Assembly (NCBI RefSeq): GCF_006345805.1
Contig: NC_043026.1
Coordinates: forward strand, 4,588,001 to 4,652,000
DNA: 64,000 nucleotides
Source of the DNA: Octopus sinensis
Lineage: Eukaryota
Direction of reading: 5' to 3'
Shown: positions 601-50,568 of the stretch, piece after piece
How positions within the stretch are numbered: the stretch's first letter is position 1
Layout: every line of letters begins with the position of its first letter
Notes under the pieces: generated by a model
Seen by the model: the letters and a program-made list of their open reading frames with translations, nothing else
Told to the model about the DNA's origin: nothing
Database searches by the model: none
Made by a program: the position numbers and the translations under genes

Positions 601-2330
601 TATGGCTACCCTCGTCACATCTACTCTGATAATGTTTATTTCTATGTCCTCTTCAGGAGACACTCTATTCTCAGATGTTACGATCTATATGGACAAATGA
701 AATGGCAGTGGGAACTGCCTTTCCCTGTTCACCCTCACATTGCTGTTTTCCAAGGAACTCTTAATGTCCCCGACACTCAACTCAACAGGGTTCTTCTTTA
801 CAAGTATCAAGACCGGTCGTCTGCTTGCCTTTTACCCATTAAAAATCCTTATATCAGAAATCTAAATCTACGACTCAAAGAAAAGGAGAATGACCAAAAA
901 CTTGTCATTGGCGAAATATGTAATCTGTCCAATGGACAGTTGGTGGTGTCCGACATCAAGCATGATTGCTTGTTGTACATTTCTGAGGAAGGAGACATTG
1001 TGTCCAGATTATCTCTGCTGTCTACAGCCACAGATATATGTTAGTGGGGTTCTAATAATATAGGGGTCACAAGATGGTCGCCAGTGTTTTACAGTCCCAA
1101 ATGAAACCTCCCCACAATTTCTATGGTGAATGTATAGATAAAAATGTTTATCTGTTAGACAACATGCCTATGTTTGTTATAAATGATTACGCTTTGGTGG
1201 TTAAGGATCTCGTTACAAATAATCAGCTTAATATTGACATGGCACATCTATTTTATAGAAACATCTGTGTCAGTGAAATGTTGTCTTCTAAATTCTATCT
1301 ACAGGATCTCCAGGTTTCCGAGACAAACAACCAGTGCAGATTTTTCGTTTGGTTATTACTGAAAACAACTTGATTGCAATATACGACAGGAAAAATAAAA
1401 AACATAAGAAATTCATATTTGATGGTCATCTTTTGGATTCTATCAAATTGAATGTCTCTCCCATCAATATGTGTCGATGGCAGTCAAACCAACTGGTTAT
1501 TACAACTGGTGATGGTGACAACCAAATGTTGACATTAAAAGTTGAATTTCAATTGTCATTGGTGATTTAGCAGACAAGAAATAAATATCATTGTATTGCT
1601 TCTTTGTCGGATGGTCTACTAGTATATAATTGGGATGGAGATGAACGTACTTTGTATGTCATTGATTTTGATGAAATCCATTCGACTGTGAGTATAATGA
1701 AGCAAATAGACATATCCGAGACATTATTGATGAGAGGTGGTGAGGTTATTGATTATGTTGAAGGCATATGCAATATTACAGTGACTGTTAATGATGTCAT
1801 CCTCATTAGCAACAACAAATTCATCAATTTCCTCAGTAGTGATGGTCAGTATTTACATTCAGTTAGACACTACATGAAGTATATCAGTATTCATAGCAAC
1901 ATAACAGTTGATGAGAAAAGATATCATCTCTATGGTATATTTAAAAACATGGTGTGTTTCACACAGACTGGTGACCACAGCAAAATATATTTAAATGAAA
2001 GAATTTGTGTATGTAAAGTGGGCTTTAGCTGTATAAACAGTAAAGGGCCGAGATTTATTGGAAGTCACAGAAATAAATTGTATGTTGAAGGTTTGTTTCA
2101 GCTTAATCGGGAGAGATTCCCTGTTTGTCGGTTACAAACAGACGACTGTCCTGTTCAAGTAAAAGATTTTGATGTCTCTGAGGAAGGAAAGACAGTTGTG
2201 TGTGAAAAAGCCAATAATGGAAATGTTAAAATATTCGATAGAGACGGGGAGTTGCTATGTCATAGAGATGTTGGAAGTTTAGTTGGTGGTGTGTATTTTA
2301 CAGGAGAAAGAGGGATAATGGTCACACTTA
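601..2330 (+). pseudogene. Partial, disrupted paralogue of the 1393-aa tandem beta-propeller gene (equivalent to about aa 614-1320)
   Basis: 601-1060 is nearly identical to 39121-39590. ORFs 697-1044, 1074-1373, 1334-1570 and 1604-2401 are collinear with the intact protein (e.g. VQVKDFDVSEEGKTVVCEKANNGNVKIFD). It has a ~315-bp deletion near 1070, stops and frameshifts, and is truncated by a SINE. Confidence 0.92.
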
Positions 2331-2334
2331 CTCT

Positions 2335-8597: not shown

Positions 8598-11500
8598 TTA
8601 GGAAGATGGATACGTTAGGAGTTCAGAACTTACCCGAAAAACTTGCACAAACCTTGCTGGCCATCGAACTGTTCTTCCTGATTTGGTGTGTCGGGGTTGT
8701 GCAGAATCTGTGGTGTTCGCTGGAGTTGCCGAGTCTGTTTGAGGAAAAGAGGGGACTGAATGTAAGTCCTCCTCGATGAAAGCTTTTTTTAAACGATCAA
8801 TCGAGACCGTATTTCGTTTACCTCCAATATCGAGGACGAAATACTTGGGTTCTCTTTTGATGACCTTGTAGGGCCCGGAATATGGTGGTCGAAGTTGAGA
8901 GGGTATCCCATCATTCCTCACGAAGACATGAGTCCATGTGTTGATATCTTTTGGGACACGTGAAACGACGTTCTGTTGTATGGGGCCTGAGGGTGATACT
9001 TGCGACATGGATGTTCGTAATCGGTGCACATATTGTTGTGGGTCAGGGAAGTTTTGTGAAACAGGTTCGATCATCTGCCCAGGTAAGGTGAGTGTTGTGC
9101 CATAAACGAGTTCGGCCGGAGTATATCCCAGTTCTTCCTTAATCATGGATTGAATTCCAAGGAGGATGAGAGGGAGATGTTCCAACCAGTGAGAACTGTC
9201 TGGAGCTGCTTTTATAGATGCCTTGAGTTGGCGGTGAAAGCGTTCCACCATGCCATTTGCTGCAGGGTGGTAAGCTGTAGTGCGGGTGTGTTTACACCCG
9301 AGGAGACGAGTCAGCTCGGTGAAAAGGTGGGAATCGAACTGACGTCCTCTGTCGGTGGTAATTGTTGCGGGTGTGCCAAAACGCGAAACCCATTGTGATA
9401 TCAGCGTTTTAGCGACCGTTTCTGCTGATATATCAGATAGGGGCCAGGCTTCGGGCCATCGCGAGAACCTATCTACGCAAGTTAGCAAATATGAATAGTT
9501 CTGCGAAGGTGGCAGGGGTCCAACGATATCAATGTGAACGTGCTGAAATCGTGCATCGGGCTGTGAAAATGAACCGATTGGTGATTTTATGTGCCGGTGG
9601 ATTTTCGCTTTTTGGCACGCAACACAGCACTTGGTCCATTCTCTGATATCCTTGTTGATACTGGTCCACACAAAACGGGTCGATATTAGCTTTTGAGTGG
9701 AGCGAATACCAGGATGTGACAGAGAATGTAGAGCGGAGAAAACTTCTCGACGATATTTCTGTGGTACATAAGGGCGTTGGTAACCAGTGGAAATATCACA
9801 CCACATTATGGGCTGTGGATGATGGTAGTGGAACATGCTGAAATTTCAGAGATGACGAATTCCGGAGCTTTAGAAGTTCTTCGTCATTCTCCTGGTCAGC
9901 TGCTATACGTGCCAGATCAATTGTAGACGTGGTGTGGATAGCATTGATCTGCGCACGTGAAAGTGCATCGGCTGCCACGTTGGTCGTCCCTTTGATGTGG
10001 CGTATATCCGTCGTGTACTGCGATATGAAGTCGAGGTGACGAATTTCTCTCGGCGAATGGCGATCCGGTTTGGTGTTAAATGCGTATACTAATGGCTTGT
10101 GGTCGGTATATATGGCAAAATTGGTACCTTCTAGCATATGACGGAAATGCTTAACGGCCAGGTATGCCGCCAATAATTCCCGACTGAATGTGCTGTATTT
10201 GGTTTCCGCGGGTTTTAACCGCTTAGAAAAGAAAGACAACGGTTGCCATATACCGTCAACAAGCTGTTGTAGCACAGCTCCGATTCCGGAATCGGATGCA
10301 TCAACGAGTAAACATCGTGGGGCGTCTGGTTTTGGATAAACCAACATGGTAGCGCTAGATAACGCTTTTTTCAGGGCAGCGAAGAAACGAGTTGATCTTC
10401 GGTCAGAGCTATATCTGCGTTTTTGCAGGTTCGCTGACGTAGCAAATCCGTGAGCGGTTGCGCTATTTCAGCGAGGTGGGGCACGAACCGTCGATAGAAA
10501 TTCGCTAGACCGAGATATTCCCTTAATTTGCGGAGAGATGTGGGTGGTGGAAAATCCACGATGGCCTTGACTTTCTCGGGAAGGGGACGAATTCCATTTT
10601 TATCGACTATATGGCCGAGAAAATGAAGGGAAGCAACTCCGAACAAACATTTGGTAGGGTTGATAACAATTCCGAATTTACGTAAACGTTCGAATAGCAG
10701 GTGAAGGTGTTGATTATGCTCTTCGTCCGAGTTACTGGCCACGAGTATGTCGTCTATGTAGGCATAGACGAAAGGCAAACCTCTAGTCACCATGTCGATA
10801 AACCTTTGGAATGTCTGTGCCGCGTTTCGTAAACCGAAAGGCATACGCAGGAATTCAAACATTCCGAAAGGTGTAGTCACTGCTGTCTTTGAGATGTCTG
10901 CAGGTTCGACTGGGATTTGGTTGTATGCTCGCACCAGGTCGATTTTTGAAAAGATGCGAGCTCCATGCAGCGAGCTCGAAAAGTCCTGAAGAAAGGCACC
11001 GGATAGGCATCACTGATAGTGCTTTTATTCAGTGATCGATAATCGCCGCAAACCCCGCCAATCGGTCGATGATTTTTTTGGGACGCAGTGTATCGGCGAG
11101 GACCAGTTGCTGCTGGAAACGCGGATGATTCCGAGGTCGAGCATGTGCTGGAATTCCCGCTTGACGGCCTGGAGACGATCAGGTGGTAACCTTCTGGGCC
11201 TTGCAGCAACAGGTGGACCGCTGGTTTTGATGTGGTGGGTAACGTCGTGCTTTATCGGCTGGTTATGAAAAACTGGCCGGGCGACATCTGGATAATCATT
11301 CAGGATGGAACTGTGACGAGTCGTTGTCGTAAGCATTACAGTTGGGCTGACTGTGTCCATTCGAGCGGCTATACCGCGCACAGTAAGCTTGGTGGTGGTG
11401 TCGACAAGTCGTCTGTTCTTTATGTCTACCAGGAGACCGAAATGATGCAGGAAATCGGCTCCTAAGATAGGGGTCGGCAGTTTAGCGACGACGAATACCC

Positions 11501-11840
11501 ACTGAAATGTGCGGCGTAGTCCTATGTTTAATGTTAGGGACTGTTCACCGTAGGTTGGAATGGGTGAATGGTTGACTGCCTGAAGACAGACTGATGTCTC
11601 TTTTCTTTTTCCAGAAGTGTTGGAGACTGGGATGATGCTGACTTCCACACCTGTGTCAACCAGGAAACGCGTGCCTGTTACACGATCGCAAACGAAAAAC
11701 AGGCGACTGTGTGGGTGCGAACCAGGAACTTCCGTCGCGTTCAATTCCTGGCTGTGCCGTTTCCCGAACTGGGTGAGGAAAACGAGCACGGTACCGTACA
11801 TTTTTGTGCCCGTGTTCTGAATGTTCGGTGGTACCCACAC
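8598..11840 (-). pseudogene. pol: gypsy pol (protease, RT, RNase H, integrase), frameshifted
   Basis: FLVDTGVEVSII (protease), [14 protein letters not shown]...[11 protein letters not shown] (RT), LLVDASDSGIGAVL...DHKPL (RNase H), HSLSHPG...HIDIVGPLP...TDRGRQF...NGMVERFHR and GPY (integrase). Confidence 0.95.
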
Positions 11841-12733
11841 GTGTCATGTGAGTTTCGGGTAGCACTGGGGCTTCGAGACCGTCTGCCATCTCATCGAGAT
11901 CGGCTGGTGCTTCGACGCTGGGGACTAAACTTTAGGGCTTGTATTTGGGCTGTGAGAATTTGTATTTGCGCAGCTTGCTGCGTCATTAATGCACGCAAAT
12001 CCGAAATCTCTGAAGAACTGGTTTGTGCACGGAAAGGATTGGTACTGGGAGCGGCTGGCGTCACCGTCGATACCGTTGGATATCTGTGCGGTACTTCGGC
12101 TATTTTGTCAGCTAGCTCCGCCAGTTCTTCAAGGGATGTGTTTTCTCTGGTGGACGCGAGAACAACCTGGGTATTGGAGGGCAGACGCTGGAGAAAAAGT
12201 TGCTTGAAGATTTTTTCTGGGAGCGTCTCATCTCCGAGAAGCTGTTTCATTCTCCGAAGAAGCTGGGACGGCGTTTTGTCACCCAATTCTTCCGATATCA
12301 GAAGCTGGTGAAGTCTTTTTTGTTGGGATTCTGAGGTTCTGTTTATTAACGTGGTTTTTAAAACTTCATATGAAACAGAACCGGGTGGTGCCATGATAAG
12401 GTCGCGTATCACGTTCGTTATTTCTGGTGACAGAGAACTGATAACGTGAGAAAGTCGAGCCGCATCGCTCGATATTCTGTGAGAGGCAAACTGTGCCTCT
12501 ATATGGTGAAACCACAATGTCGGGTCGTGGGTCCAGAATGGTGGAATTTTTAACGAGATCGCCGCTTGGAATGCCATGTCGATGTTGGCCGCTGGGTTTT
12601 GTTCCGGGAGATTCATTGTTTTCGTCGGAATTTTCAGTTGCTTCGTTGCTGGTGATGTGCAAACTGTAATTCTTCGACGCGGTTGATGAAGCTGGTTCCG
12701 GGGAAGGCGCGATTCGTTTTGCGGGGTCACCAA
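11740..12733 (-). pseudogene. gag: gypsy gag with one premature stop; GGGAAAC slippery site at 11759-11765
   Basis: LKIPPFWTHDPTLWFHHIEAQF...LGDKTPSQLLRRM. TGA at 11891-11893, then in frame CGYHRTFRTRAQKCTVPC and SGN overlapping the pol frame. Confidence 0.92.
12722..12732 (-). promoter_or_regulatory. Primer-binding site, tRNA-Trp type
   Basis: TGGTGACCCCG begins 2 nt inside the 5' LTR edge and is complementary to the eukaryotic tRNA-Trp 3' end. Confidence 0.85.
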
Positions 12734-13956: not shown

Positions 13957-15130
<1,174 letters not shown>

Positions 15131-15602
15131 GAGGGGAGAAAGGAAAAGGCTACTTTGTATGGTTCTTTTGTAATCTTCTTTTTCTTTTTAATATTCCCGT
15201 GAGTCATGTAATTGACACCATGACTCTGAAAATAACGTTTTTACAAAAATTTCAGTTTTTGTCTCTTTTTTGAAAAATTTCTCTCAGCTTCCTCCTTTAC
15301 TTCCATTCCCATTTCATTTTCCATGATGTAGGGACCTCTATACTGAAATTCCTCCTGGCAACCCTACACATGGCTCTTTGCTGAATATCACTTCCCTAAT
15401 TTACTGTATATTTATTCATTATTAAATTTTAAATACTTTGCTCATTAAATGTGTTAACAGTTACGTATATTAGGAGTTTTTCAAACACAGAAATGCAGTA
15501 AAGTTGTCAAATATTCAACAACGAAAATATTCAATCTTTTATCTTAAATATATGAGACGTTCGGTTTCTGACATTTTCATTCTTTGTGTCTCTTCTGTCT
15601 TT

Positions 15603-16900: not shown

Positions 16901-19386
16901 CCTTCCAGACCTAGAATTACGTGGTGGTGGAATAGTGCAGTAGATAAAGCCATCTGTGAAAAGAGACGGGCCTGGAAAGCCTGGAAGGATGGGGGCAGCA
17001 GGGAACTGTACCAGATAGCCAAAAGGGAGGCTGGGCGGCAGGTATACATTGCCAAAGATGTAGCAGAAAAGAAGAAGTTTGCCAATGTCCAGCGTCGCGA
17101 GGATCAAAGAGCTGAAGTATTTCGGATTGCCAGACAGTGTGTCAGAGAAAATAGCGATGTTATAGGAGAGAAATGTGTCCGCATGGATGATGGGGCACTT
17201 GCTTTTACTACTAGTGAAAAGAAAGAGGCTTGGAAAAGCCATTATGAAAGACTGCTGAATGAGGAGAATGAATGGGAGGAGGAGAGCCTGCCAAATGTTG
17301 ACCCAGTAGAGGGACCAGCTACCCGAATAGACAGCTCCCTTGTAGATAAGGCAATTAAGGATATGAAACCAGGCAAAGCCCCTGGCCTATCAGGAATCAC
17401 TGCTGAGATGCTTAAAACAGCTGGCTATGTGGGCCATGCCATAGTCACCCGCATTGTAAACCAGGTAGTTCACAATGGAGCAATACCCAATGACTGGTGC
17501 AGCAGTACCATAGTCAACTGCTACAAGGGTAAGGGTGATGCTCTAGATAGAAATAACTACAGAGGTATCAAACTGTTGGACCAGGTGATGAAGGTCTCAG
17601 AGAAGGTCATAACCAATCTCATTAGGGAGAGAATTTGTTTAGATGAAATGCAGTTCGGTTTTGTACCAGGTAGAAGCACCACTGATGCTATATTCCTGGT
17701 CCGACAACTGCAGGAGAAGTACCTAGCTAAAGATAAACCCCTCTACATAGCTTTTGTAGACTTGGAGAAAGCCTTTGACAGGGTTCCCCGTTCCCTTATC
17801 TGGTGGTCGATGCGGAAACTGGAGATTGAAGAATGGCTAATAAGGGCTGTACAGGCTCTATACAGAGAGGCTGTTAGCAAGGTTAGGATTGGCAACGAAT
17901 ATAGTGAAGAATTCCGAGTAGAAGTAGGTGTACACCAGGGCTCAGCCCTCAGTCCCCTTTTATTCATCATAGTCCTTCAGGCAATAACAGAGGAATTCAA
18001 AACGGGATGCCCCTGGGAGCTCCTCTATGCCGATGACCTAGCTCTCATAGCAGAATCACTACCGGAACTAGAAGAGAAATTTCGGGTGTGGAAGCAAGGG
18101 TTGGAATCAAAGGGCCTTAGAATAAATGTAGCAAAGACCAAAGTATTAGTAAGCAGCAAGAGGTACTCAACACACATCCCCTCGGGTAGGTGGCCCTGCT
18201 CAACCTGTAGGAAAGGTACAGGTAGAAACTCCATAAGATGCACCCAATGTAAGTTATGGACACATAAGAGGTGCAGCAACATTAAAGGGAAATTAACAGA
18301 TAAGATAGCTTTCATGTGCGGCAGATGCACAGGGACAATAGACACAACAGACACTCAGAAAACAGATTCCATCACACTCCAGGGAGAGAAACTAGAAGTA
18401 GTTGATAGTTTCCGCTACCTGGGAGACCAAGTTAGTAGCGGAGGTGGATGCACAGAGAGTATCACCACTAGAATACGAATAGCCTGGGCAAAGTTCAGAA
18501 AGCTCCTACCCCTACTGGCAACAAAAGGCCTCTCCCTCAGAGCAAAAGGTAGATTGTATGATGCATGTGTGCGAACTGCCATGCTTCACGGTAATGAAAC
18601 ATGGGCTGTGACTGCAGAAGACATGCGTAGACTTGAAAGAAATGAAGCTAGCATGATCCGCTGGATGTGTAGTGTCAGTGTGCACGCAAAACAGAGTGTA
18701 AGTATCCTGAGAGAAATGCTGGATATAAGAAGCATCAGATGTGGTGTGCAAGAGCGACGCTTGCGATGGTATGGTCATGTGCTGCGGATGGATGAAGAGA
18801 GATGTGTGAAGAAGTGCCACTCCCAAACAGTTGAAGGTATCAGGAGGAGAGGTAGACCCAGGAAGACATGGGATGAGGTGGTCAAGCATGACCTCAGAGC
18901 ATTGGGCCTCACTGAGGCAATGACGAAGGACCGAGATCTCTGGAGATATGCTGTGACTACAAAGACCCGGGCTGCTTTCTGCAGCAATTCCACATACCCC
19001 CTACCCATTCTAAGTACCCCGGATCCCCAAAGTACCCCGGATCCCCAAAGTACCCCGGATCCCCAAAGTACCCTGGATCCCCAAAATACCCCGATCCCCA
19101 AAGTACCCCGGACCTCGTTGCCCCCGTGCCGCTGACACGTTAAAATGCTCGAACCGATCGTGACGATGCCGGACCCTCCGGCCCCTGTGCAGGTGGCACG
19201 TAAAAAGCACCCAATCCACTCACGGAGTGGTTGGCGTTAGGAAGGGCATCCAGCCGTAGAAACTCTGCCAGATTCAGACTGGAGCCTGGAGCGGCCCCTG
19301 GCTTCCCAGACCCGGTCAAACCGTCCAACCCGTGCTAGCGCGGAAAGCGGACGTTAAACGATGATGATGATGATGATGATGATGAT
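16898..19386 (+). mobile_element. RTE-clade LINE, 5'-truncated, uninterrupted RT frame 16898-19135, (GAT)n tail
   Basis: NYRGIKLL, QFGFVPGRSTTDAIF, FVDLEKAFDRVP, GVHQGSALSPLLF, LLYADDL, FRYLG. The 3' UTR ends ...ggacgttaaacgatgatgat. Confidence 0.96.
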
Positions 19387-23084: not shown

Positions 23085-26000
23085 CGGGCCAACATACCAG
23101 CCAAATTGACTACATCCTTGCCAGGCAAAGGGAGAGATGGCTACTTATAAATGCCAAAACCTTCCCAGGCGAAGAATGCACCCCACAACATAGACTGGTA
23201 GTTAGTGACTTTAGGATCAGAAGTAGGAGAACAACCAGAAGACGACCAACATGGAGAAGAAGGATCTGGAAGCTTAAGGATCCTGTGAATGGACAGAGAT
23301 TTAGAGACATGTTACTTGAAGCCTTTGACGAAGTAGAAAGTAGAAGGGGATAGTGTATCACATGGGGTAGAGGACAACTGGACGTTTCTAAGGGACAACC
23401 TGCTGAGAGCCACTGACCAGATCTGTGGCTGGTGCAAAGTCCCCTCTCGTCCCAAGGTAACGTGTGGTGGTGGAACAGTGTCGTAGACAGGGCTATTAGA
23501 GAAAAGAGACAGACTTGGAAGCACTGGAAGAATGGTGGTAGCAGGGAATTGTATCAGACTGCTAAAAGGGAAGCTAGGAGACAGGTCTATCTAGCCAGAG
23601 GGGAAGCAGATAAGAAAAAATTTGCCAATGTTCTGCGCCGTGAGGACCAAAGACTGGAGGTGTTTCGCGTTGCAAGACAGTGTGTGAGAGAGAATTGTGA
23701 TGTGGTGGGAGAGAAGTGTGTTCGCATGGAAGATGGTTCACTTGCGCTAAACGAGGATGCAAAGAGAGAGGCTTGGAGATGCCACTATGAAAGGTTGCTG
23801 AATAAAGAAAATGAATGGGATAAAGAGAGTCTGCCGAACGTTGACCCAACAGAGGGACCAGCTATCAGGGTTGATAGTTCCTTAGTAGCTAAGGCAATTA
23901 GAAGCATGAAGACAGGGAAAGCCCCAGGCCCATCAGGTATCACTGCAGAGATGCTCAAAATATCTGGTAGTGTCGGCTATAGCCTAGTCACCTGTATAGT
24001 TAATCATGTGATACATGAAGGAGTCATACCCAATGACTGGTGTGTAGCAGCATAATAGTCAACTGCTACAAAGGTAAAGGTGATGCCCTAGATACAAATA
24101 ATTACAGAGGTATCAAGCTGTTGGATCAGGTGATGAAGGTTACAGAGAGGGTCATAAGCCAACTAATTAGAGAGAGAGTTAGTTTAGATGAGATGCAGTT
24201 TGGTTTCGTGCCAGGGAAAAGTACCACTGATGCTATATTCCTGGTAAGGCAGCTGCAGGAGAAATACCTAGCCAAAGATAAGGCCATGTACCTGGCTTTT
24301 GTTGACATGGAGAAAGCCTTCGACAGGGTCCCCCGATCCCTCATATGGTGGTCAATGAGGAACTAGGAATAGAAGAATGGTTAGTGAGAGCTGTGCAAGC
24401 CATGTACAGGGACGCTGCTAGTAAGGTGAGGGTTGGAAATGAGTACAGTGAAGAATTCCGGGTAGAGGTAGGGGTCCACCAAGGCTCAGTCCTCAGCCCC
24501 CTCCTATTTATCATAGTCCTCCAGGCAATAACGGAGGAATTCAAGACAGGATGCCCCTGGGAGCTCCTCTATGCTGATGACCTTGCTCTAATTGCTGAGT
24601 CATTATCAGAACTGGAGAAGAAGTTTCAGGTGTGGAAGCATGGTTTAGAATCGAAGGGCCTTAGAGTCAACCTAGCTAACCAAAGTCGTAATAAGTAGGA
24701 AGGTAGACAAATCACAAACGCCTTCAGGTAGATGGCCCTGCTCGATCTGTAGAAAAGGTGTAGGTAGAAACTCTATAAGATGCACCAAGTGTAAGCTATG
24801 GACACATAAGAGGTGCAGCAATGTCATAGGAAGGCTAACTAGGAAGATGGTTTTTGTATGTGGCAGATGCTCGGGAGCATTAACCTCTGAAAATCTGCAG
24901 AAAACAACTTCCGTCACTTTCCAGGGGGAAAAACTAGAAGTGGTTGATAGCTTCCGTTATCTTGGTGACCAAGTCAGTAGTGGGGGTGGGGGTGCTGAAA
25001 GTGTAACGGCTAGAGTAAGAATAGCCTGGGCAAAGTTTAGGGAGCTCTTACCTCTGTTGGTGACTAAAGGCCTCTCGCTCAGAGTAAAAGGCAGACTGTA
25101 TGATGCATGTGTACGAACAGCCATGCTACATGGCAGTGAAACATGGGCCGTGACTGCTGAGGACATGCGTAAGCTCGCGAGAAATGAAGCTAGTATGCTC
25201 CGTTGGATGTGTAATGTCAGTGTTCATAGTCGACAGAGTGTAAGTACCTTGAGAGAAAAGTTGGACCTAAGAGGAATCAGATGTGTTGTGTGCAAGAGAG
25301 ACGATTGCGCTGGTATGGTCATGTGGTGAGAATGGATGAAGATAGGTGTGTGAAAAAGTGCCACACCCTGGCAGTTGAGGGGACCTGTGGAAGAGGTAGA
25401 CCCAGGAAAACCTGGGTCGAGGTGGTGAAGCACGACCTTCGAACTCTAGGTCTCACCAAGGAAATGACCAGAGACCGAGACCTATGGAAGTATGCTGTGC
25501 GTGAGAAGACCTGGCAAGACCAGTGAGAACAATCAAAATCAAATCATATATCAGAAAGCAGGGGTTAAGTGACCCATCCGTTCATGTCCGCTGTCAGCCT
25601 CGTCTGGCACCCGTGCCGGTGATACGTAAAAGCACCATTCGCTCATGGCCGTTTACCAGCTCTGCCTGGCCCCGTGTCGGTGGCACGTAAAAGCACCATC
25701 CATTCGTGTTCGTTGCCAGCCTCGCCTGGCCCCGTGCCGGTGACACGTGAAAGCACCGTCCGTTCGTGGCCGTTGGCCAGCTCTGTCTGGCCCCGTGTCG
25801 GTGGCACGTAAAAGCACCATCCGTTCGTGGCCATTTGCCAGCTCTGTCTGGCCCCGTGTCGGTGGCACGTAAAAGCACCATCCGTCCGTGTCCATTGCCA
25901 GCCTCAGCTGGCCCCCGTGCCGGTGACACGTAAAAGCACCGTCTGCTCGTGGCCGTTTGCCAGCTCTGTCTGGCAACCGTGTCGGTGGCACGTAAAAGCA

Positions 26001-37252: not shown

Positions 37253-37274
37253 TTTTCCTTATATTTCTTTACAG
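37253..37274 (+). promoter_or_regulatory. Putative splice acceptor 7 nt upstream of the ATG (5'-UTR intron)
   Basis: ttttccttatatttctttacAG|attcactATG. Confidence 0.6.
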
Positions 37275-37281
37275 ATTCACT

Positions 37282-40200
37282 ATGGAAGACCAGACTGAAA
37301 ATACTCAGAAAAGAGCTTTAAGGGACTCAACACCAAAAGGGGATGAAGAAGAAGTTGACAATAAAAGGTGGAAATATGAGGAAGATGATGGTTCAAGGAG
37401 AGAAATGTCCGAGAAACGATCTTCATCTCAGCCAACAACAAAACAAAAAAGACATAAAGGAGACCCTAAAAACAGGGAAATAATTAGAAAACGAGATGTT
37501 TTGGACAAACACATATTTTATACAAGATTCAATGCCTATGAGGACAAAATTGATTTGCTGATAAATTCTCGGAAAAAAATATGTACTTTTTTAAAAAGAA
37601 TAGGAATGGATGAAAATACTTTTCTAAAACATTTTACACAGAGAATAGAAATTCTGATGAAAGACATTAAAAAAAAAGATTACAATCAAGAATTTATAAT
37701 TTTTGGAAAACTAGAATTGTTCCTGGAACACTATTTAAAGACAAATGTTTTACAAGACAAACACAAAACCATTGAAGCACCAAAAATAATCACAAAATTT
37801 CGGCCTCTTCAGCCAGTTGTGACTAGAGAAGCAAACATTGAGGAATCTGGAGAAGAATTTGAAGAAATCCCAATAATATCCAATATTGTCATCATAGAGG
37901 AGGGAGTGATGACATATTCCCACCATTGCAAGATAATAAGTTTAGTAACAAGAGACAGTGACAGAATTGATGTCCATTGTCCATCTTCTGTGACCAGTTT
38001 CACAAGAATCAGTGAAGACATGGTTCTGGCAACCCTCCCCTTCCATGAAATGATTCTTATTATCAGCCCCAAAACCTTCAAGATCAAAAGGATACAGTTG
38101 GGGTTACATATGGTGAGTTACTTGGAAGATTCTACACTCTTAGGTGTAGAAATGTTTGGTAAGACTGTTTACCAATTTGATTGGGAGGATAACACCATTA
38201 ACTATCAATTTATTACCAAAGAAACCCCTACAGATATTGCTGTAGGGGTCCAGAATATACTTGTAATTACATTCGCCAGCATCAACAGAGTAATCTGTTA
38301 CAAACTGGATGGCCAACAGTTATGGGAGGTAGAGACCCATTCTCTGCACCTCCCAAGTAAAATCTCTCTCTACCAAAATTATTTCTATGTCCTCCAGGGA
38401 CAAATAATTTATAGGATTTCAGCTAAAGGTGGTGTAACAAGGAGGGACATTGGCAGGAAATGCCGCTCTATTTCTGTTGGTAAAGATACCATTTTGGTAA
38501 CAGATTATTGCGGCAAACCACATGGTATTCAAATGAATAAAGACTTTTGGCCCAACCTGTCATACAACCACCAGCTACATACTCCCAGTTTAAAAGACTA
38601 TATTGATATTGAGGATTGCTACAACATTACAAATATTCTACCTATGTCTACATCTTCTATATTAATAATTTACAAAAACAAGAAAGCTAAATTATTCACT
38701 GATAACGGGGAAATAATTAACCAAAATAATTCAGTTTTCCTTGAGCTTCCTTTTTTCTGTTGTAGAATAAACGCAAACAGATTCCTGGTATTTTATTGTG
38801 AAATGAAAGGATTTCAGTATATCACCTGTCCTGAACTAAGAAAAGGCCCTTTAATAAAGGTGCAAACTGGTTACATGAAAATATGTCATATTGTATCAAA
38901 TAAGTATTTAGCTGTGACCACCAATGAAAACAAAAGCGAGGTCCAAATCCTATTGATCAACGAAGATAAAGTTGACATTGCAGAAAGAATTTCTCTGGGA
39001 CATCATAATGTCAGCATTGCTGCAACTCCAATTAATTTTGTAGTCGTAGATGGAAACGAAAATAAAATGGTATTTTATTCCACATGTGGTGAAGAACTTT
39101 TTCAAAAATACCTTCCATTCTATGGCTACCCTCATCACATCTACTCTGATAATGTTTATTTCTATGTCCTCTTCAGGAGACACTCTATTCTCAGATGTTA
39201 CGATCTATATGGACAAATGAAATGGCAGTGGGAACTGCCTTTCCCTGTTCACCCTCACATTGCTGTTTTCCAAGGAACTCTTTATGTCCCGGACACTCAA
39301 CTCAACAGGCTTCTTCTTTACAAGAATCAAGACTGGTCGTCTGGCTGCCTTTTACCCATTAAAAATCCTTACATCAGAAATCTAAATCTACGACTCAAAG
39401 AAAAGGAGAATGACCAAAAACTTGTCATTGGTGAAATATGTAATCTGTCTAATGGACAGTTGGTGGTGTCTGACATCAACCATGATTGCTTGTTGTACAT
39501 TTCTGAGGAAGGAGACATTGTGTCCAGATTATCTCTGCCGTCTACAGCCACAGATATATGTCGATGGGATTCTAATCATATAGGGGTCACATTACCCCTA
39601 CAGAAACAATTAAGCGTCATTGGAAACCTATCAAAGACAGTGAGAAGTGTAAAATTAAGGCAGCCTTATGTACAGGTGTGTAAGATGGGTGAATGTGAAA
39701 TTGTTTGTTATTGTGATAAACCATCACATTTAGACATTTTAGCCATCAATAATTATAATCAAGTTGAAGTAATTAAGACAATTAATATCCCTGTGTTTGT
39801 GAAATCATTATCAGTAGACAAGGAAACAGAAAAGCTATTAATTGTTACTAGGGGAAAAGCTTTTCAGTACAACACTAGAATAGGTGGTGGTGGTCGTGGA
39901 GGTCGTCAGATGGTCCCCAGTGTTTTAATGTCCCAAGTGAAACGTCCCCTCAGTCTCCAAGGTGGATCTATTGACCAAACGTCTGTTTATCTGATAGACA
40001 GAAGCCGTATGTTTGCCATAAACGATCAGAATTTGTTGGTTAATGATCTCGTTACTAATAATCAACTTAATTATTATATCGACCTGGTGGATGTATTTTC
40101 CAGACACATTTCTCTCAGTGAAATGTTGTCTTCCACTTTATATCTACAGGACCTGACAGTTTCTGATAAAGCCAGACATATTCCTCTCCCTAAACATTTG

Positions 40201-41463
40201 GGAGACAAAGGACCAGCGGAGATTAGATCTTTGGTTCTTACTGAAAATAATCTGATTGCAGGATGTGACAAGAAGAATGGAAACATTAAGATATTCACAT
40301 TGGATGGTCACCTTATGGATTCAATCAAAGTGAATGTTTATTATAATATTAAAATGTGTCGATGGCAGTCAAACACACTGGTCATTACGAGTTGGGATAA
40401 TGAAAATCATGGTAAACCCCAACTGTTGACATTAAAAGTGGAATTTCCATTGTCGTTGGTAATTTACAAAACGAGAAATACATATGAATGTGTGGCTTCT
40501 TTATCAAACAATCAACTGGTTTTTAGTGAACGGAGAGATGAAAGACATTTGCATTTTGTTGATATTGATGAAATAAATTCGAGTGTGAAGGAAATAAAAA
40601 AAATAAACATACCTGACCCATTAATATTGAGAGAAGATGGAGATTATTCTGATAGAATCCAGGATATTAAAGTTACTGATGAAGATGTCATCATTGTCTT
40701 CAACTGGAGATTCATCATTTTCTTCAACAGTGGTGGTCAATATTTACATTCAGTCAGACACTACATGGGGTATTCTGGTGTTGACAGGATGACAATTGAT
40801 GACAGTTTTTTGTACATTTATGGTCGGTGGGAGAAATGTTCAGGTTCATCTGGATATCAAAACATTTTGTGTTTGACCCAGAATGGGGAATACAAGAGAA
40901 TATTTTTAAATAAAAGAATTTATAAAGATGAAGTAGATTTCTCCAGTATAGACTGTCAAGGACCAAGGTTTGTTGGAAGTCTTCGGAAGAGGGAAAGAGA
41001 GAATGAATTGTATGTTGAAGGGTTGTTTATGGTGAATCGAGACAGCTTCCCGGTTGCTCGTTTACAAACAGACGAATGTCCTGTTCAAGTAAAAGATTTT
41101 GATGTCTCTGAGGAAGGAAAGACAGTTGTGTGTGAAAAAGCCAATAATGGAAATGTTAAAATATTCGATGAAGACGGCCAGTTGCTATGTCACAGAAATG
41201 TTGCAAGTTTAGTTGGTGGTGTGTGTTTTACACAAGAATCACACATAATGGCCACGGTTCCTAAAAGGAAAGAAATATTTCAACTGAATGGAGAAGATTT
41301 GCAGACATCTCAAGTTTGCTCGAGTCTCATCCCTTATGGTGTAATATGGAGAAAAGTGGCGGGTATTTACTGGTGTGTACATAATGAATTGATTGAATGT
41401 CATTGCATAAAGATTGATGGGGACCAAGTGAACATTCTGGAATCTGTGTCGTCATTAACTTGA
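37282..41463 (+). CDS. 1393-aa protein: charged/helical N-terminus plus about five tandem NHL-like beta-propeller units
   Basis: 4.2-kb stop-free ORF in AT-rich DNA with no transposon motifs. Similar blade-start motifs at aa ~197, 445, 714, 979 and 1268, and recurring (D/K)(I/M)CRW. The fold is inferred from resemblance to the C-terminal propellers of molluscan TRIM/NHL-like proteins. Confidence 0.85.
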   Translation: MEDQTENTQKRALRDSTPKGDEEEVDNKRWKYEEDDGSRREMSEKRSSSQPTTKQKRHKGDPKNREIIRKRDVLDKHIFYTRFNAYEDKIDLLINSRKKICTFLKRIGMDENTFLKHFTQRIEILMKDIKKKDYNQEFIIFGKLELFLEHYLKTNVLQDKHKTIEAPKIITKFRPLQPVVTREANIEESGEEFEEIPIISNIVIIEEGVMTYSHHCKIISLVTRDSDRIDVHCPSSVTSFTRISEDMVLATLPFHEMILIISPKTFKIKRIQLGLHMVSYLEDSTLLGVEMFGKTVYQFDWEDNTINYQFITKETPTDIAVGVQNILVITFASINRVICYKLDGQQLWEVETHSLHLPSKISLYQNYFYVLQGQIIYRISAKGGVTRRDIGRKCRSISVGKDTILVTDYCGKPHGIQMNKDFWPNLSYNHQLHTPSLKDYIDIEDCYNITNILPMSTSSILIIYKNKKAKLFTDNGEIINQNNSVFLELPFFCCRINANRFLVFYCEMKGFQYITCPELRKGPLIKVQTGYMKICHIVSNKYLAVTTNENKSEVQILLINEDKVDIAERISLGHHNVSIAATPINFVVVDGNENKMVFYSTCGEELFQKYLPFYGYPHHIYSDNVYFYVLFRRHSILRCYDLYGQMKWQWELPFPVHPHIAVFQGTLYVPDTQLNRLLLYKNQDWSSGCLLPIKNPYIRNLNLRLKEKENDQKLVIGEICNLSNGQLVVSDINHDCLLYISEEGDIVSRLSLPSTATDICRWDSNHIGVTLPLQKQLSVIGNLSKTVRSVKLRQPYVQVCKMGECEIVCYCDKPSHLDILAINNYNQVEVIKTINIPVFVKSLSVDKETEKLLIVTRGKAFQYNTRIGGGGRGGRQMVPSVLMSQVKRPLSLQGGSIDQTSVYLIDRSRMFAINDQNLLVNDLVTNNQLNYYIDLVDVFSRHISLSEMLSSTLYLQDLTVSDKARHIPLPKHLGDKGPAEIRSLVLTENNLIAGCDKKNGNIKIFTLDGHLMDSIKVNVYYNIKMCRWQSNTLVITSWDNENHGKPQLLTLKVEFPLSLVIYKTRNTYECVASLSNNQLVFSERRDERHLHFVDIDEINSSVKEIKKINIPDPLILREDGDYSDRIQDIKVTDEDVIIVFNWRFIIFFNSGGQYLHSVRHYMGYSGVDRMTIDDSFLYIYGRWEKCSGSSGYQNILCLTQNGEYKRIFLNKRIYKDEVDFSSIDCQGPRFVGSLRKRERENELYVEGLFMVNRDSFPVARLQTDECPVQVKDFDVSEEGKTVVCEKANNGNVKIFDEDGQLLCHRNVASLVGGVCFTQESHIMATVPKRKEIFQLNGEDLQTSQVCSSLIPYGVIWRKVAGIYWCVHNELIECHCIKIDGDQVNILESVSSLT

Positions 41464-42704
41464 TTCTGGTCTTCGTTTCCCTTCCATTACATCTGAAACG
41501 AACAAGAAAATATTCAGTAATGAATTAATTAGTAATTGGAATACAGAGGAGGAGATGGAGATGGAGGAGGAAAAGAAGAAGAGGTAAATCAGGTGAAATA
41601 ATTGGTAAAGGTAGATTAAAGGTGAGATGTGGTAATTACATAGCGGAGATTAATAATTCAGGAATTCATGAAATATCAGTGAGGAGATTTCCATATAGGA
41701 CAGCAATGGTCCCTTTTTCCATTCCTGCATTCGAGGAACCTCTCGATTATAATCGGAGGGACATTAGGGACCAGAACAGTAAACTAATTAAGTTAGATGA
41801 GAATGTGAGTGTGTTGATGTTTCGAGAAAGTGTCACATTAATCAGAACAACAACAACAACAGTGGACATACTTCAACATGAACAACAACAACGACCAGCA
41901 CTGGACATATGTCGGTGGACAGAGGAATGTTTCATTGTCGCCTTTGGGAGAGAAATGAGGGTCTTCACAGGGATCTCCGTCATTTAAAACCATCAGAACT
42001 GAGAAATACTACAAGGATTTATAATACAACGACAATCAACTCGTGTGTGGTGGTCATTATATTAGAGACATAACTCAAAAAGAGAGACACAAGAATACCA
42101 AAGAAGATGGGAGAACAACAAGTATTACTATTATTGCAAAGACCCCAAAATCTTTGACCCTTATTATGTGGATGTGGTTGATTTTGAAGATGGGAAATGT
42201 AAAGATGAAGTGTGTGGTGGGAAGATGTGGAGAAAGGGAAGGTTGGAGGGACATGAAGGGGTGGATGGTGTGGGAGTCACATCTTTTGGTGATGTTGTTG
42301 TTGTGAGGAGGGAGATGGAAGAGGGGGAGTCTGGATGGAGGGAAGTTTTTTGTTTTGTGGAATGGTTCAGGGAAAAGTCTTTGGTGAGGAGGATAAGAAT
42401 AAAAGAAATATTTATTGGTCTGGGATATTATATTCCAAGACTTGGTCTGACCATAATTGGTGAATGTGTTTATATAACAGATACAATAAACAATATTTAC
42501 GAAATACCTCGACATATTGAAGAGGAAACATCTGAAGATGATGAAATCCTGAGATTAAAAGATAATCCAAAATATTTACTCCTGAGATGGGATGATAATG
42601 AAGTCTTTGAAGTTCTTGGTTTGGATGTTTCAGACAATTCTTTGATGGTTTTTGGAATTATTCCTGGACGTCAACCTTTTGCTTTCTTTTATTTTGACAA
42701 ATAA
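41462..42704 (+). pseudogene. Frameshifted continuation of the propeller gene (acidic linker plus probable sixth unit)
   Basis: Successive frames read DSGLRFPSIT...EEEMEMEEE, GKSGEIIGKG...PALDICRWTEECFIVAFGREMRVFT, KTIRTEKYYKDL*YNDNQLVC and DPYYVDVVDFEDG...PFAFFYFDK*. Confidence 0.7.
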
Positions 42705-43304: not shown

Positions 43305-43490
43305 CAGACGACCAACAACAACAACAACAAAAACAGCAGACGACCACCGCCGCCGCCACCACCATCATCATCATCATCGTCACCACCGCCGCATTCATCA
43401 TCATCATCGTCATCATCATCGTCATCATCGTCATCATCGTCGTCATCATCGTCGTCATCATCGTCATCATCATCATAATCATCATCGTCG

Positions 43491-43522
<32 letters not shown>

Positions 43523-43545
43523 GTCGTCGTCATCAGTGTCGTGTG
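43305..43545. repeat. (CAA)/(CAC)/(CAT)/(CGT) trinucleotide low-complexity tract
   Basis: Directly visible. Confidence 0.9.
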
Positions 43546-45202
43546 TGCAGTCTGCATCTGACAGTTTTTAACGTTTAATAAGAATAGATTGTTGTTGTTG
43601 TTGTTGTTGCAGTGACATTCCAACTGCACACACGCACAAACATTGCCTTTCGTCCTCGTAGGGTTGTTGTTGTTGTTGTTGCTGTTGGGGATTCATAAAA
43701 AAAGAGAAGGACACTTTAAGAAGCATTCAGTAAAAGCTTTCCCATAGCTGGTCATTTTTCATATTAGAAATCGAAACCACTTTACTTTTCATATAAAATT
43801 TGAAGGACACTTTAAGAAACATTCATAAATAAAATTGACCTGTATATGGTCTCATTTCATGCTAGAAAGAGCCACAAAAACCTTCACATTTTTGTTTCAT
43901 CACAAATAAAAATCGAAGGACAATTTACAAAGCATCCACGTCAAATATTGTCCTATAGATGGCCTAACATCATGCTAGAAATAACAGCCAAATACTCTGA
44001 AATTTGCATCGTTTTTCATCAAAAAAGTGATGGACACTTTAAGAAGCAACTCTGAAAATATTGTCCTGCGGCGGTTTAAGTGTAAAATAAGTGTAAAAGT
44101 ATGCATCTATGAGTTTTATGTGTTTAAAAAACATAGCAAAGACATGTGTGTATATGTAGGTATATATAAATATACATGTGTATAAAGGTTCCTTTATGAT
44201 GTATATGCTTCTTCCCTAATAACTTGCAGAGAAATGGATATTTTTCATGGAATTTCCTACAAATATGCTTCAGATGGTGTAAATTCCGATTCTATGGGGA
44301 TTTATTGGGAAAACTTTATTCTTTCAAAGCAAAGGCAAATCTTGTTAATTTTCTAAAACTGCTTTTCCCCACCCAGGGACAAACGTTTTCACAATGAATT
44401 CTGATTTAATCGGATCTAAACCATCTGAAGAATATCTGTAGAAAATTTCATTAAAAAATATTTAATTTTGCGCAAGTTGTGAGAAGCAAATTCGGCATAA
44501 CTACAGATATATACCCCACCGACTTTGTGTCCTCATAACTTGCAGAAAAATGCATATTTTTTTAAGGAAACTTTCAACAAATAATCGCTTAGATCCTGTA
44601 GATTGAGTTTTTGTAAGGATTTGTTGGAAAAACATTTTCTGAAGGGTTGCAGAAAGGAGTTTCTCAAAATTCACACAACCAGACATTTTCCCTCCTCATA
44701 AATTTCAGGAAAATAGGAAATTTTCAATGAAATTTAAAAGAAATAACTTTCAAACGATGTAGATTACGATTAAAAAGAAATTTGTTGGCAAAATGTTTTG
44801 TAAGGGGTCGAGGGAAAAAGTGTGTGATTTAAGGGAGATTTGGCTGTTGTTTCTAGCACACCACCCTCCTTGTCTTCTTTTTTTTCTCATTTTTTCCCTC
44901 AGAAACACATTTATGTTATAAAAAAATAAAAAGAATATTTAAAATCTCTGATTATTTTTAGCCCCACTTCTGGCCCCCGATTCTTTCTCTTTATATAATT
45001 GTAAAATATTGGAGAGCCTGAGAAGATTCTTGCTGGGATTTATCCACAGGGATTTAAATAAGAGCTTTGTAAAAGAGGATTTCTTTTGAGAGCATCCTTT
45101 TCTCTTAGAAAATGAAAGTGGAAGTTTCATTAAAAATATCCATTTTCCTGGAAGTTATGAGGAAACAAAGTCGATGGGGTGTTCATCTGTAGTTATGCCA
45201 CA

Positions 45203-47889: not shown

Positions 47890-47992
47890 CTATATAATAT
47901 ATAGTATAATTAAGGGTAGAAATTGATATTTATCAATTAAGACCAGTGGTCTAGCATATTAAATAAGAATCCGAAGATTAAAATATTTATAT

Positions 47993-48192
47993 ATACCAAT
48001 TGAGGACTGAACACGAAAAGTGGACAGTCAACATGCTAGATATAGACGTCAAATCGCCATTCTCCACAAAAGATTATTCTCAGATCAAACTCACCAAGTT
48101 TGATCTGAGAACATAATCTTTTGTGGAGAATGGCGATTTGACGTCTATATCTAGCATGCTGACTGTCCACTTTTCGTGTTCAGTCCTCAATT

Positions 48193-48197
<5 letters not shown>
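47993..48197. repeat. Hairpin palindrome, ~100-bp arms, 5-nt loop
   Basis: Loop cacca at 48092-48096. The arms differ by one substitution and a 2-nt indel. Confidence 0.92.
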
Positions 48198-48255
<58 letters not shown>

Positions 48256-48739
48256 GTCTGTATTTAACTCTCTCACTTTGTCTTTATCTACAACAACCTC
48301 CACTCTGTACCAGTGTCTGGGGTTTGGTTGTTTATGGAAGTGGTATGTTTAACAAGGAGTGTTTCAGCCTCCCATTCTACTACTGAGTCCTCAACACACA
48401 CACACACACACACACATGCAAACAATCCAACACATACACACCCACGTCGTTCAGTGATGGAAAGGGACATCCGTCCTATTTGTGCAGATGTGTAGGTGTG
48501 AGGCAATCCTTTTACTCAATATAGAAAGAGAAATAAGGAAATAGATTTCCTTCTCTACCTCTGCCTTGTCATGGATTTGAACGCGAATCCACAGGAAGCC
48601 AACTCGCAGAATTATAACACGCGTTTTATACATACATTCACCCATATAAACACATGCAGCCACAAGTACACAGTCATATACAAAACATGTGTGTACGTCT
48701 CTCTGCTTGTGGCCATATTATGTGTATATCTATGAGATA

Positions 48740-48988
48740 TTGAGTTGGTGTATAATTATTGCGGCTATTTTCAACAAATTTTATTCAACAAAAACAATAA
48801 CAATATTTAACAAAAACATCTTTGAATGACGGTCTGACCGTCTGCCAAGCAAATGGGAAGCAGTAATTGAAGGAGATGGTGAATATGCTCCGGAATAATC
48901 ATTTAAAGATGTTTTTATTGCATGTTGTTATTGTTTTTGTTGAATGAAATTTGTTGAAAAAAGCCGCAATAATTATGCACCAAGCCAA
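48740..48988 (+). mobile_element. mariner-derived MITE
   Basis: TA-flanked TIRs ttgagttggtgtataattattgcggct (mariner ITR-like). Interior encodes RLPSKWEAVIEGDGEYAPE*, a mariner transposase C-terminus. Confidence 0.85.
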
Positions 48989-50568
48989 TATGTATATAAC
49001 AAGGTAGAATGAACAGAACATTTTCGGCCTCTATTCTAGGACTCAACCAAGTAGAAACACACACTGATCGATCGATAGGTAGACAGATAGAGAGAAAGAG
49101 AGGGAGAGATGGATAGACAGACAGAAGACAGATACATAGATAGACGCAGGAGTGGCTGTGTGGTACGTAGCGTGCTTACGAACCACATGCTTCCGGGTTC
49201 AGTCCTACTGCGTGGCACATCTGTAGCCTTGGGCCAACCAAAGCCTTGTGAGTGGATTTGGTAGACGGAAACAGAAAGAAGCTCGTCGTATATATATATA
49301 TATGTATACATAGACAAACACACGTGTAAGCATACGCACGCACGCACACACACACGTAAGTTTATGCAAGTATTTATATACTTGCATACACCTGTATAAT
49401 TATGGCTCTGGTAAAATCCTCACAATGAGATTCTTAGAAATGTTGTCGCTAAATCCTGTGCATCACAGGCTGCAACAGTTACCATTCTCTCACTCCACAT
49501 CGACAGACATGTCTCACCTGCACACTTCATCCTATCAACAACTTCCAACAGAAAATGCCTTCCTTTTATGCGTTGCATCTCTCCTGAATTCTTACATGTG
49601 CAACCAGTAAACATTTTAAAAAGTTTAGTCAGCATTTAAATCTAGTCTTGTCGACTGCAGTTTTTGTGCCTCTAGCAACAAACAGCTCTCCTAAGAGATT
49701 TCCTATTCCACTTACGAGAGGCGATTCAAGTCTTTCAGAACCAGCTCCCCTGCAATTCTTGACTTCGTCCCTTGAAGCAGAGGTTAGGACTCACCTAAAA
49801 GACACAAATGAACGTCTGGAAACAGCAGTCTATATCTGACCAACTCAGACTGGTTTGCCAGCTCCAAAAGGCAACGAAAAATGCTCATTTTCTAAGAATT
49901 CACCCAACAGTGAATCAATATTCTTTACTTAATATCGTCACCTATTTCTTAACGTCTCCATTTTCCTGGTGTATATATTTTATCGCCTGCCGTCTTCTTT
50001 CTATCGTTTAAACACAGCAGACACGGCAGAATCGTATCGAAAACTGTTCAGAAGTATTTCAGGAGGAAAAAAGAAAGCAAAGCCACCTCAGTGATCAAAA
50101 GCAAAATCTATTCAAACAAACCTAAAACATACAAGTCACCATACGACATTATGTGATGTAATATAGTTTTGTGTATAGAAAGTATTAGATTTGATGTGGA
50201 CCTTGTTGTTAATGACAACCAGTGTGTTATGTATTCTTTTGGTTCGTGGTGAGATAATAAACAACTCACTGAAGGCATTTTTATGATTCTACCCGTTTCT
50301 TTACTTGGCATGTTCACAAACTGTAAATGTACAGCGGAGTGATACACACTGTGCGTATCCGCCTTAGACACAGTTCATACTGTTTACTAGATGCGCTTAA
50401 CAAAATAGTACTATAGTGGGGATGTATTCATATATACGTATATCTTCGCATACACATAGATATGAACGTGTAACATTAATAAACACCCACTTTACAATTA
50501 TCTAAAGTGTGTATACATTCGTGTGGGGCACACCCTGTATATATACATGTACAACGGGCTACTTTCAG

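Follow-up and report, generated by a model that had tools for sequence, protein, structure and literature searches.

A truncated member of an octopod family of predicted multi-propeller proteins in Octopus sinensis

Results

A long single-exon ORF and its predicted fold

The window analysed here is a 64,000-nucleotide stretch of Octopus sinensis DNA (NCBI RefSeq assembly GCF_006345805.1, contig NC_043026.1, positions 4,588,001 to 4,652,000 of the forward strand). Its longest open reading frame (ORF) starts with an ATG and spans 37282..41463 (+), encoding 1393 amino acids (aa), while the runner-up, with 650 aa, is under half that length. An initial annotation, made from the sequence alone, had noted an intact ORF here and read it as a single-exon gene for tandem NHL-like beta-propellers. 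A polypyrimidine tract and AG splice acceptor (37253..37274, +; ttttccttatatttctttacag) end 7 nucleotides (nt) before the ATG, which implies one or more upstream exons in the 5' untranslated region. Three O. vulgaris paralogues share the 60-nt context of the acceptor letter for letter, paralogues in O. bimaculoides and O. sinensis have it almost unchanged, and gene model P0001 splices in at the position equivalent to 37273. Since the paralogues share this context, the acceptor is conserved and the coding sequence lies in a single exon, as had been proposed.

The N-terminal region (aa 1-189; 37282..37848, +) is hydrophilic and basic, without RING or B-box. Residues 1-190 have a grand average of hydropathy of -1.17, an isoelectric point of 9.3, one Cys and five basic patches resembling nuclear localization signals, in line with the charged, basic N terminus first described. 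Neither a signal peptide nor a transmembrane segment was found in the ORF protein, whose very N-terminus is hydrophilic (-2.16). A Pfam scan of this protein returned no family even at E <= 10, EGF and Ldl_recept_b included. The same scan of five relatives gave nothing at threshold (ANAPC4_WD40 scored 17.7 bits against a cut-off of 22.9), and a phmmer search of the whole ORF against PDB sequences produced only noise (shikimate kinase, E ~1.3).

We modelled residues 195-1393 with AlphaFold2 from 32 family sequences. The model is nearly all beta-strand, organised in four-stranded blades, with a predicted local distance difference test score (pLDDT) of ~70-88 in units A, B and D. Unit A (aa 190-445; 37849..38616, +) shows four confident four-stranded blades (pLDDT ~70) followed by a low-confidence stretch, and unit B (aa 446-712; 38617..39417, +) about six blades (~24 strands, pLDDT ~70-83). 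Unit C (aa 713-975; 39418..40206, +), the most conserved and the one with the clearest NHL link, carries a Gly/Ser-rich insertion and is modelled with low confidence. Unit D (aa 976-1262; 40207..41067, +) is modelled with six blades (pLDDT ~70-88) and is hypervariable on one predicted face; it is followed by the highly conserved half unit E (aa 1263-1393; 41068..41460, +), to which the predicted strands give ~three blades. Overall, the predicted strands are compatible with six blades each in B and D and with four or more in A. Units C and E are of low confidence, and a second structure prediction placed unit E at pLDDT 20-40. The best Foldseek matches in the PDB were LRP2/megalin, LRP4, DDB1, IFT-A, Sevenless/ROS1 and CPSF160 (E ~1e-17), with low template modelling scores, as is to be expected where domains have no fixed position towards one another. 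Of the 'about five propellers' of the initial annotation, the tandem units stand and the count does not: there are four full units and a half unit of ~three blades.

An octopod-restricted family

The ORF has 42 relatives at E = 0, which come without exception from O. vulgaris, O. sinensis and O. bimaculoides and carry only the annotation 'uncharacterized' or 'hypothetical' (LOC106868082, LOC115226288 and CAI9728090.1 are among these unnamed members), so that the earlier failure to assign a named family is borne out. Similarity is colinear from a shared Met in more than 40 proteins, at 49-93% identity and with query coverage reaching 100%. When 1.84 billion representative proteins were searched exhaustively with the family profile, only 30 matched, 27 of them at E <= 1e-10; the 13 whose source was looked up were all octopod (two from Argonauta hians), and the three weakest matches were B-box/NHL proteins, non-octopod or of a source not known. 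A second homology search, with an alignment of unit C, added few relatives and no informative names. As far as HMMER sees, the family thus appears to be confined to octopods (Octopus, Argonauta).

In O. vulgaris the window's subfamily has expanded on a single 29-Mb chromosome, where its copies sit between C2H2 zinc-finger genes. P0043 and P0048, which are 44% and 32% identical to the window ORF, lie on other chromosomes, and each clusters at >=90% identity across three Octopus species. The window copy is therefore one of dozens of octopod paralogues, fragments and pseudogenes included, rather than a system unique to this window. Our literature searches found no description of the family, and a paper on C2H2 expansion (PMC12513265) does not treat it in its outline. 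A look-up of P0017 and P0023 for transcript-derived assemblies returned genome records only. In O. vulgaris, a further copy 93.6% identical to the window stands head-to-head with P0006 (L003 3608-10176, -); its longest ORF (1090 aa) lacks the start and end sequences of the family, and it is probably also disrupted.

A private deletion ends the window ORF before the last propeller

Full-length relatives begin at the same Met, align up to the last residue of the window ORF and then continue for ~390 aa. Intact single-exon ORFs of 1776-1812 aa in O. vulgaris and 1783 aa in O. bimaculoides encode one extra C-terminal propeller. In DNA alignments with three intact paralogues, the TGA stop of the window ORF (41461..41463, +) is made by a window-private 2-bp deletion at ~41458. 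Beyond it lies the disrupted remainder of the gene (41464..42704, +), comprising the low-complexity linker and the C-terminal propeller F; it is colinear with the intact paralogues and ends at the family's own stop codon, switching frame repeatedly on the way. The copy in the window is thus incomplete, the last propeller being frameshifted eight times. The window ORF appears to cover three-quarters of the gene, counted from the 5' end, which in intact paralogues encodes ~1780-1810 aa. The ORF product would comprise four full units and a three-blade half unit, ending at the boundary between E and the linker.

The lesions are strikingly clustered. Eight window-private frameshifting indels fall within 41458-42093, the first being the stop-making deletion and the other seven lying at 41533-42093, and reading in the paralogue frame also meets an in-frame stop. 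These 616 nt hold eight indels against nine private substitutions, while the following 610 nt hold 22 private substitutions and zero frameshifts, and the 4179-nt ORF upstream has zero frameshifts. The ratio of indels to substitutions in 41458-42093 is far above that of uniform neutral decay. Most indels in this tract are 1-bp deletions in short A runs, with indel-free flanks on both sides. The cluster may have arisen through real decay, as a conversion tract from a dead copy, or through a local assembly error. The window copy could be a shortened variant, a recent pseudogene or, should the indels prove to be errors, an ordinary family member.

The part that is ruined in the window can be judged from the intact paralogue P0003: for its last 340 residues a WD40-like propeller is predicted (pLDDT 75-95), similar to those of Fbw7, EED and PALB2. 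No WD40-type Pfam model was reached at threshold, and the likeness of propeller F to WD40 is one of fold only. The predicted architecture of the family would then be an N-terminal region, units A-D, half unit E, a low-complexity linker and propeller F.

Internal repeats and NHL ancestry

We ran hhalign on slices of the family profile cut at the unit boundaries of the initial annotation. Units matched each other in register, most clearly C with the C-terminal tail (89%), D with E (86%) and D with the tail (53%), and more weakly (17-28%) A-B, A-C, B-D, B-E and C-D. The recurrence of motifs every ~250-290 aa, first reported from the sequence alone, is thus reproduced, and the ~270-aa repeat period seems real, though ancient. 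The blade-start motif of the initial annotation corresponds to blade 1 of an NHL-type propeller. Its xICRW-type motif, which does recur, forms blade 2 in every unit and can be aligned with the corresponding blade of molluscan B-box/NHL proteins.

The three non-octopod or unknown-source matches are proteins of 441-491 aa with a B-box (one also with a RING) and NHL/SGL propellers, one of them from a freshwater mussel. In hmmsearch the family profile reaches them at E 1.7e-5 to 8.7e-4, and two of them score above the Pfam cut-off for NHL. With hhalign, unit C matches these relatives at 97% (E 5e-11), unit E at 89% and unit A at 48%, each match beginning at the start of their propeller; the N-terminal region gives 0.1%. 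The weak PDB matches of the family profile itself are NHL propellers in 12 of 13 cases (TRIM71, Brat, TRIM2/3, Thin; E 0.2-4). A unit-C profile including the three relatives finds the NHL structures of TRIM3, TRIM2 and TRIM71 at E 6e-6 to 1e-3. The link to NHL therefore comes from profiles and transitive homology, not from the Pfam threshold: by descent the units are NHL-type propellers, but judged by the Pfam cut-off the protein does not count as an NHL-repeat protein. Together with the predicted fold, the Foldseek matches, the single N-terminal Cys and the empty Pfam scan, these alignments support the tandem NHL-like propellers without RING or B-box of the initial annotation. Having neither of these domains, the protein is not a TRIM.

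Segmental duplication and gene conversion

Across the gene and 6 kb or more of sequence downstream of it, copies are 87-95% identical in nucleotides, and homology between them is colinear for at least 12 kb, into ordinary flank. Scanning the duplicated unit for repeats, we found no terminal or inverted ones, only microsatellites and short interspersed repeats, and no mobile-element genes were found within it. Shared flanks without termini or mobile-element genes are the pattern of segmental duplication.

We then computed nonsynonymous (dN) and synonymous (dS) divergence per unit by the Nei-Gojobori method for the window copy and five intact O. vulgaris paralogues. Within one pair, dS varies up to 50-fold among units: between the window copy and L002, for instance, it is 1.10 in the N-terminal region, 0.80 in A, 0.018 in B and 0 in E. 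Such inequality is the signature of gene conversion or segment swapping, and the paralogues are mosaics. There are two unrelated types of N-terminal region (MEDQTEN... and MEKINEEN...; window 37282-37756 versus L001/L002), with dS >1 and different upstream sequence. Unit A also exists as two deeply diverged types (dS ~0.8), which assort independently of the N-terminal type.

Diversification on one predicted face of unit D

Six pairs are close throughout B-E (dS ~0.04-0.06). In all six, dN/dS (omega) of unit D is 2.1-2.6. The tail reaches 1.9-2.3 in three pairs between intact copies, and A, B, C and E mostly stay at 0.2-0.8 (unit A, 0.17-0.31). Between the window copy and P0003, D differs from B+C+E (p = 2e-4), with omega > 1 at a nominal p = 0.024.

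Variable positions of unit D among four close copies are not evenly spread: they make up 17/22 positions in b-c loops and 15/34 in d-a loops, against 0/19 in a-b loops, 6/22 in c-d loops and 22/133 in strands (b-c and d-a versus a-b and c-d, p = 2e-5). Alternate loops share one face of a propeller, so the diversification of unit D lies on a single face in any blade register. Under the conventional register this would be the 'top' face, which is the ligand side in NHL and WD40 domains. An elevated dN/dS concentrated on one face of unit D would fit a recognition role, and the functional reading of the initial annotation looks plausible, now with evolutionary support.

Surroundings of the gene

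The window is a duplication-rich region. At its start lies a second, fragmentary copy of the propeller gene in two pieces (601..2332, +). The first (601-1071, +) corresponds to aa ~614-770, from the end of unit B to blade 2 of C, at 93% aa identity over 157 aa. A C2H2 array at 1-606, with three or four in-frame stops, runs in frame into it, and a stop follows; the annotated O. vulgaris P0055 and P0078 have the same make-up of zinc fingers plus fragment. The second piece (1065-2332, +) corresponds to aa ~874-1327 at 57% identity in two other frames, and is an older, decayed pseudogene fragment. Another ~13 C2H2 zinc fingers with several in-frame stops occupy ~13960-15141 (+) and resemble the N-terminal part of P0001. 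The zinc-finger cluster setting that had been noted is thus present, both arrays being interrupted by in-frame stops. In the O. vulgaris gene model P0001 a zinc-finger exon lies tens of kb upstream of the large exon; as this locus holds a complete 1812-aa ORF from the family Met, the fusion is unproven.

Several mobile-element sequences accompany these arrays. In the 650-aa ORF (17183-19135, +), a reverse transcriptase domain (E 5e-30) is accompanied by a PHD-like finger, and a related copy of the ORF lies ~6.5 kb downstream (~23600-24750, +); both resemble sequence upstream of P0003. A segment at 8598-12733 (-), with a G+C content of 43-49% against ~35% elsewhere, holds ORFs of long terminal repeat retrotransposon type with an integrase (rve, E 2e-18), an aspartyl protease and DUF7041. 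At 3232-4164 (-), a 310-aa ORF with a sub-threshold GIY-YIG match (E 0.005) may be the remnant of a Penelope-like element. Downstream of the gene we observed a long imperfect (CAT/CGT)n trinucleotide array (43342-43560) and, at 47897-50333, a segment 97% identical to the region downstream of P0008 (L002 19718-22156), above the 92% of the gene itself. It contains near-perfect 95-nt inverted repeats (47983-48207) and may represent either a conversion tract or a mobile sequence that inserted recently.

Discussion

A family of modular propeller binders with a truncated member in the window

We favour, with a probability of roughly 0.55, the view that the ORF belongs to an octopod multigene family of soluble intracellular modular propeller binders, of which the window copy is a truncated member. 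Its units would derive from the six-bladed NHL-type propeller of molluscan B-box/TRIM-like proteins, duplicated internally and with RING and B-box lost, and the family would have grown by segmental duplication while gene conversion swapped segments among paralogues. The protein would be a soluble, possibly nuclear, modular binder in which the conserved propellers A-C and E may serve as a scaffold or effector platform, and D together with F as a fast-evolving target-recognition surface, as in immune or genome-defence receptors. New specificities, for a target that may be protein or nucleic acid, could then arise through duplication, conversion and positive selection. What the data show is the ORF and its place in the family, its truncation relative to the paralogues, a predicted multi-propeller fold, NHL ancestry, restriction to octopods, mosaic paralogues and the dN/dS pattern. 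From these we infer a recognition function, an immune or genome-defence role and some activity of the truncated copy; the candidate 'nucleic-acid or pathogen sensor' first suggested goes beyond these data. Seen as a whole, the initial annotation was largely right about structure, although the locus is a truncated member of a large family and not an intact system of its own.

Several observations weigh against this view. The window copy stops at codon 1393 and does not have the complete family architecture of ~1780-1810 aa with propeller F, and an exact-sequence look-up of its ORF found no annotated product in any source. Its private changes in B+C+E (14 nonsynonymous, 3 synonymous) stand near the neutral ratio, which fits a loss of constraint on this copy, although they are too few for significance. 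The evidence for omega > 1 is nominal, coming from non-independent pairs of recombining paralogues, and may partly reflect relaxed constraint, and the 'one face' of unit D derives from predicted strand order and not from a measured surface. As for the fold, the AlphaFold2 model has a mean pLDDT of 55 and is of low confidence for unit C, unit E and the linkers, and Pfam NHL (PF01436) stays below its gathering score across the family (best, P0048, 18.5 bits versus 20).

Alternative explanations

It is quite possible, if short of probable, that the window copy is a young pseudogene, killed by the first frameshift and making nothing functional, in a family that may still function elsewhere. The long 5' ORF would then have been kept because little time has elapsed or through conversion from intact neighbours, and the very low dS to L002 in B and E points to recent conversion. 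The eight frameshifts and in-frame stop of the tail, the roughly neutral 14/3 ratio, the missing annotation and the family fragments and chimeric debris elsewhere in the window all agree with a dead copy. Yet decay would have spared all 4179 nt of the ORF and struck eight times in the next 640 nt, the counts behind the 14/3 ratio do not reach significance, and the splice acceptor and start context are intact. The truncation also falls exactly at the E/linker domain boundary, which makes a folded product plausible.

Less likely still, and in our judgement unlikely, is a housekeeping scaffold or an RNA regulator akin to TRIM-NHL proteins, in which relaxed constraint would make unit D a spacer tolerant of change. 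The established ligands of NHL propellers are RNA for Brat and LIN-41 and proteins for TRIM2/3/32. P0043 and P0048, conserved across three Octopus species and located away from the expanded chromosome, suggest conserved roles, and omega of D drops to 0.5-0.8 in older pairs. Relaxed constraint should nevertheless bring omega near 1 with an even spread of changes, and D shows 2.1-2.6 in every close pair, with its changes on alternate loops and none at the 19 a-b sites. Dozens of recent paralogues exchanging sequence by gene conversion would also be unusual for such genes.

We consider it distinctly doubtful that the frameshifts are local assembly or polishing errors and that the real gene is intact, with ~1790 aa. 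Six of the eight indels are 1-bp deletions, most in short A runs, their ratio to substitutions is ~1:1 in 41458-42093, and the next 610 nt carry 22 private substitutions with no frameshift. Errors at such a density should, however, also strike the A-rich 4.2-kb ORF and those last 610 nt, neither of which is affected, and three of the eight are 2-bp events.

A more ambitious extension of our preferred view, which we regard as a long shot, would cast the family as the part that recognises targets in an intracellular defence or genome-surveillance system specific to octopods and co-evolving with the surrounding C2H2 clusters. Its members might be TRIM-derived partners loosely analogous to KRAB-ZNF/TRIM28, or multivalent sensors of viral or transposon RNA or protein. 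The target would be read by the hypervariable face of D and by F, and the zinc-finger/propeller chimeras could be evolutionary intermediates.

That the ORF is part of a transposon or an endogenous virus is barely credible, since many dispersed copies, retroelement genes nearby in the window and a hAT-related DUF4371 in gene model P0010 are set against an ORF without transposase, reverse transcriptase or capsid domain in Pfam, a conserved splice acceptor, copies whose homology runs at least 12 kb into ordinary flank with no terminal or inverted repeats bounding the unit, and viral fold matches in BFVD that are generic propellers at 8-12% identity.

Significance of the family

Cephalopod genomes are known for lineage-specific expansions of C2H2 zinc fingers, protocadherins and G-protein-coupled receptors, and to our knowledge their innate immune and genome-defence repertoires are poorly understood. 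The family described here is a concrete candidate for a recognition system in these animals. A chain of NHL-derived propellers without a catalytic or zinc-binding domain is an architecture not described before, and this architecture, the exchange of segments and the diversification of one face together mark recognition molecules in evolutionary conflict. The family is also a clear case of a new protein class built by multiplying one TRIM-type recognition domain, and at the window locus one of the two variable propellers appears to have been lost through a natural truncation.

Comparison with known systems

The only non-octopod sequence relatives are the molluscan B-box(+/-RING)-NHL proteins (~440-490 aa; e.g. 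KAK3588083.1 of Potamilus streckersoni). Their blades 1 and 2 (NGxLVVSD..., then P..D(I/V)C...(I/V)(A/G)V(T/S)LP) align with those of each unit, and unit C aligns over the whole propeller. They carry one propeller behind a B-box/RING and a helical region, whereas octopod family members string together five to six propeller units, lack zinc-binding domains and begin with another N-terminus. TRIM-NHL proteins (TRIM2, TRIM3, TRIM71/LIN-41, Brat, Thin) provide the best profile matches of solved structure and share the NHL-type propeller, predicted to be six-bladed in the octopod family; the octopod proteins differ from them in having no tripartite motif, a multiplied propeller and an NHL signal below the Pfam threshold.

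In fold, the closest systems are those with several propellers per chain: DDB1, with three interlocked seven-bladed propellers, CPSF160, IFT-A subunits and the YWTD arrays of LRP2, LRP4 and Sevenless. None has a sequence relationship with the octopod family (8-12% identity), and LRP-type proteins are secreted or membrane-bound with EGF spacers, while the octopod protein has neither signal peptide nor EGF. Restriction factors of the TRIM type that evolve rapidly, such as TRIM5alpha with its B30.2 domain, can be compared by analogy only. That domain is a SPRY domain and not a propeller, the octopod protein has no RING effector, and an antiviral role for it would be hypothetical; what the two have in common is a TRIM-derived recognition domain with lineage-specific tandem expansion and positive selection concentrated in surface loops. 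Set beside all these systems, the octopod family presents a new architecture within a known fold family rather than a new kind of molecule.

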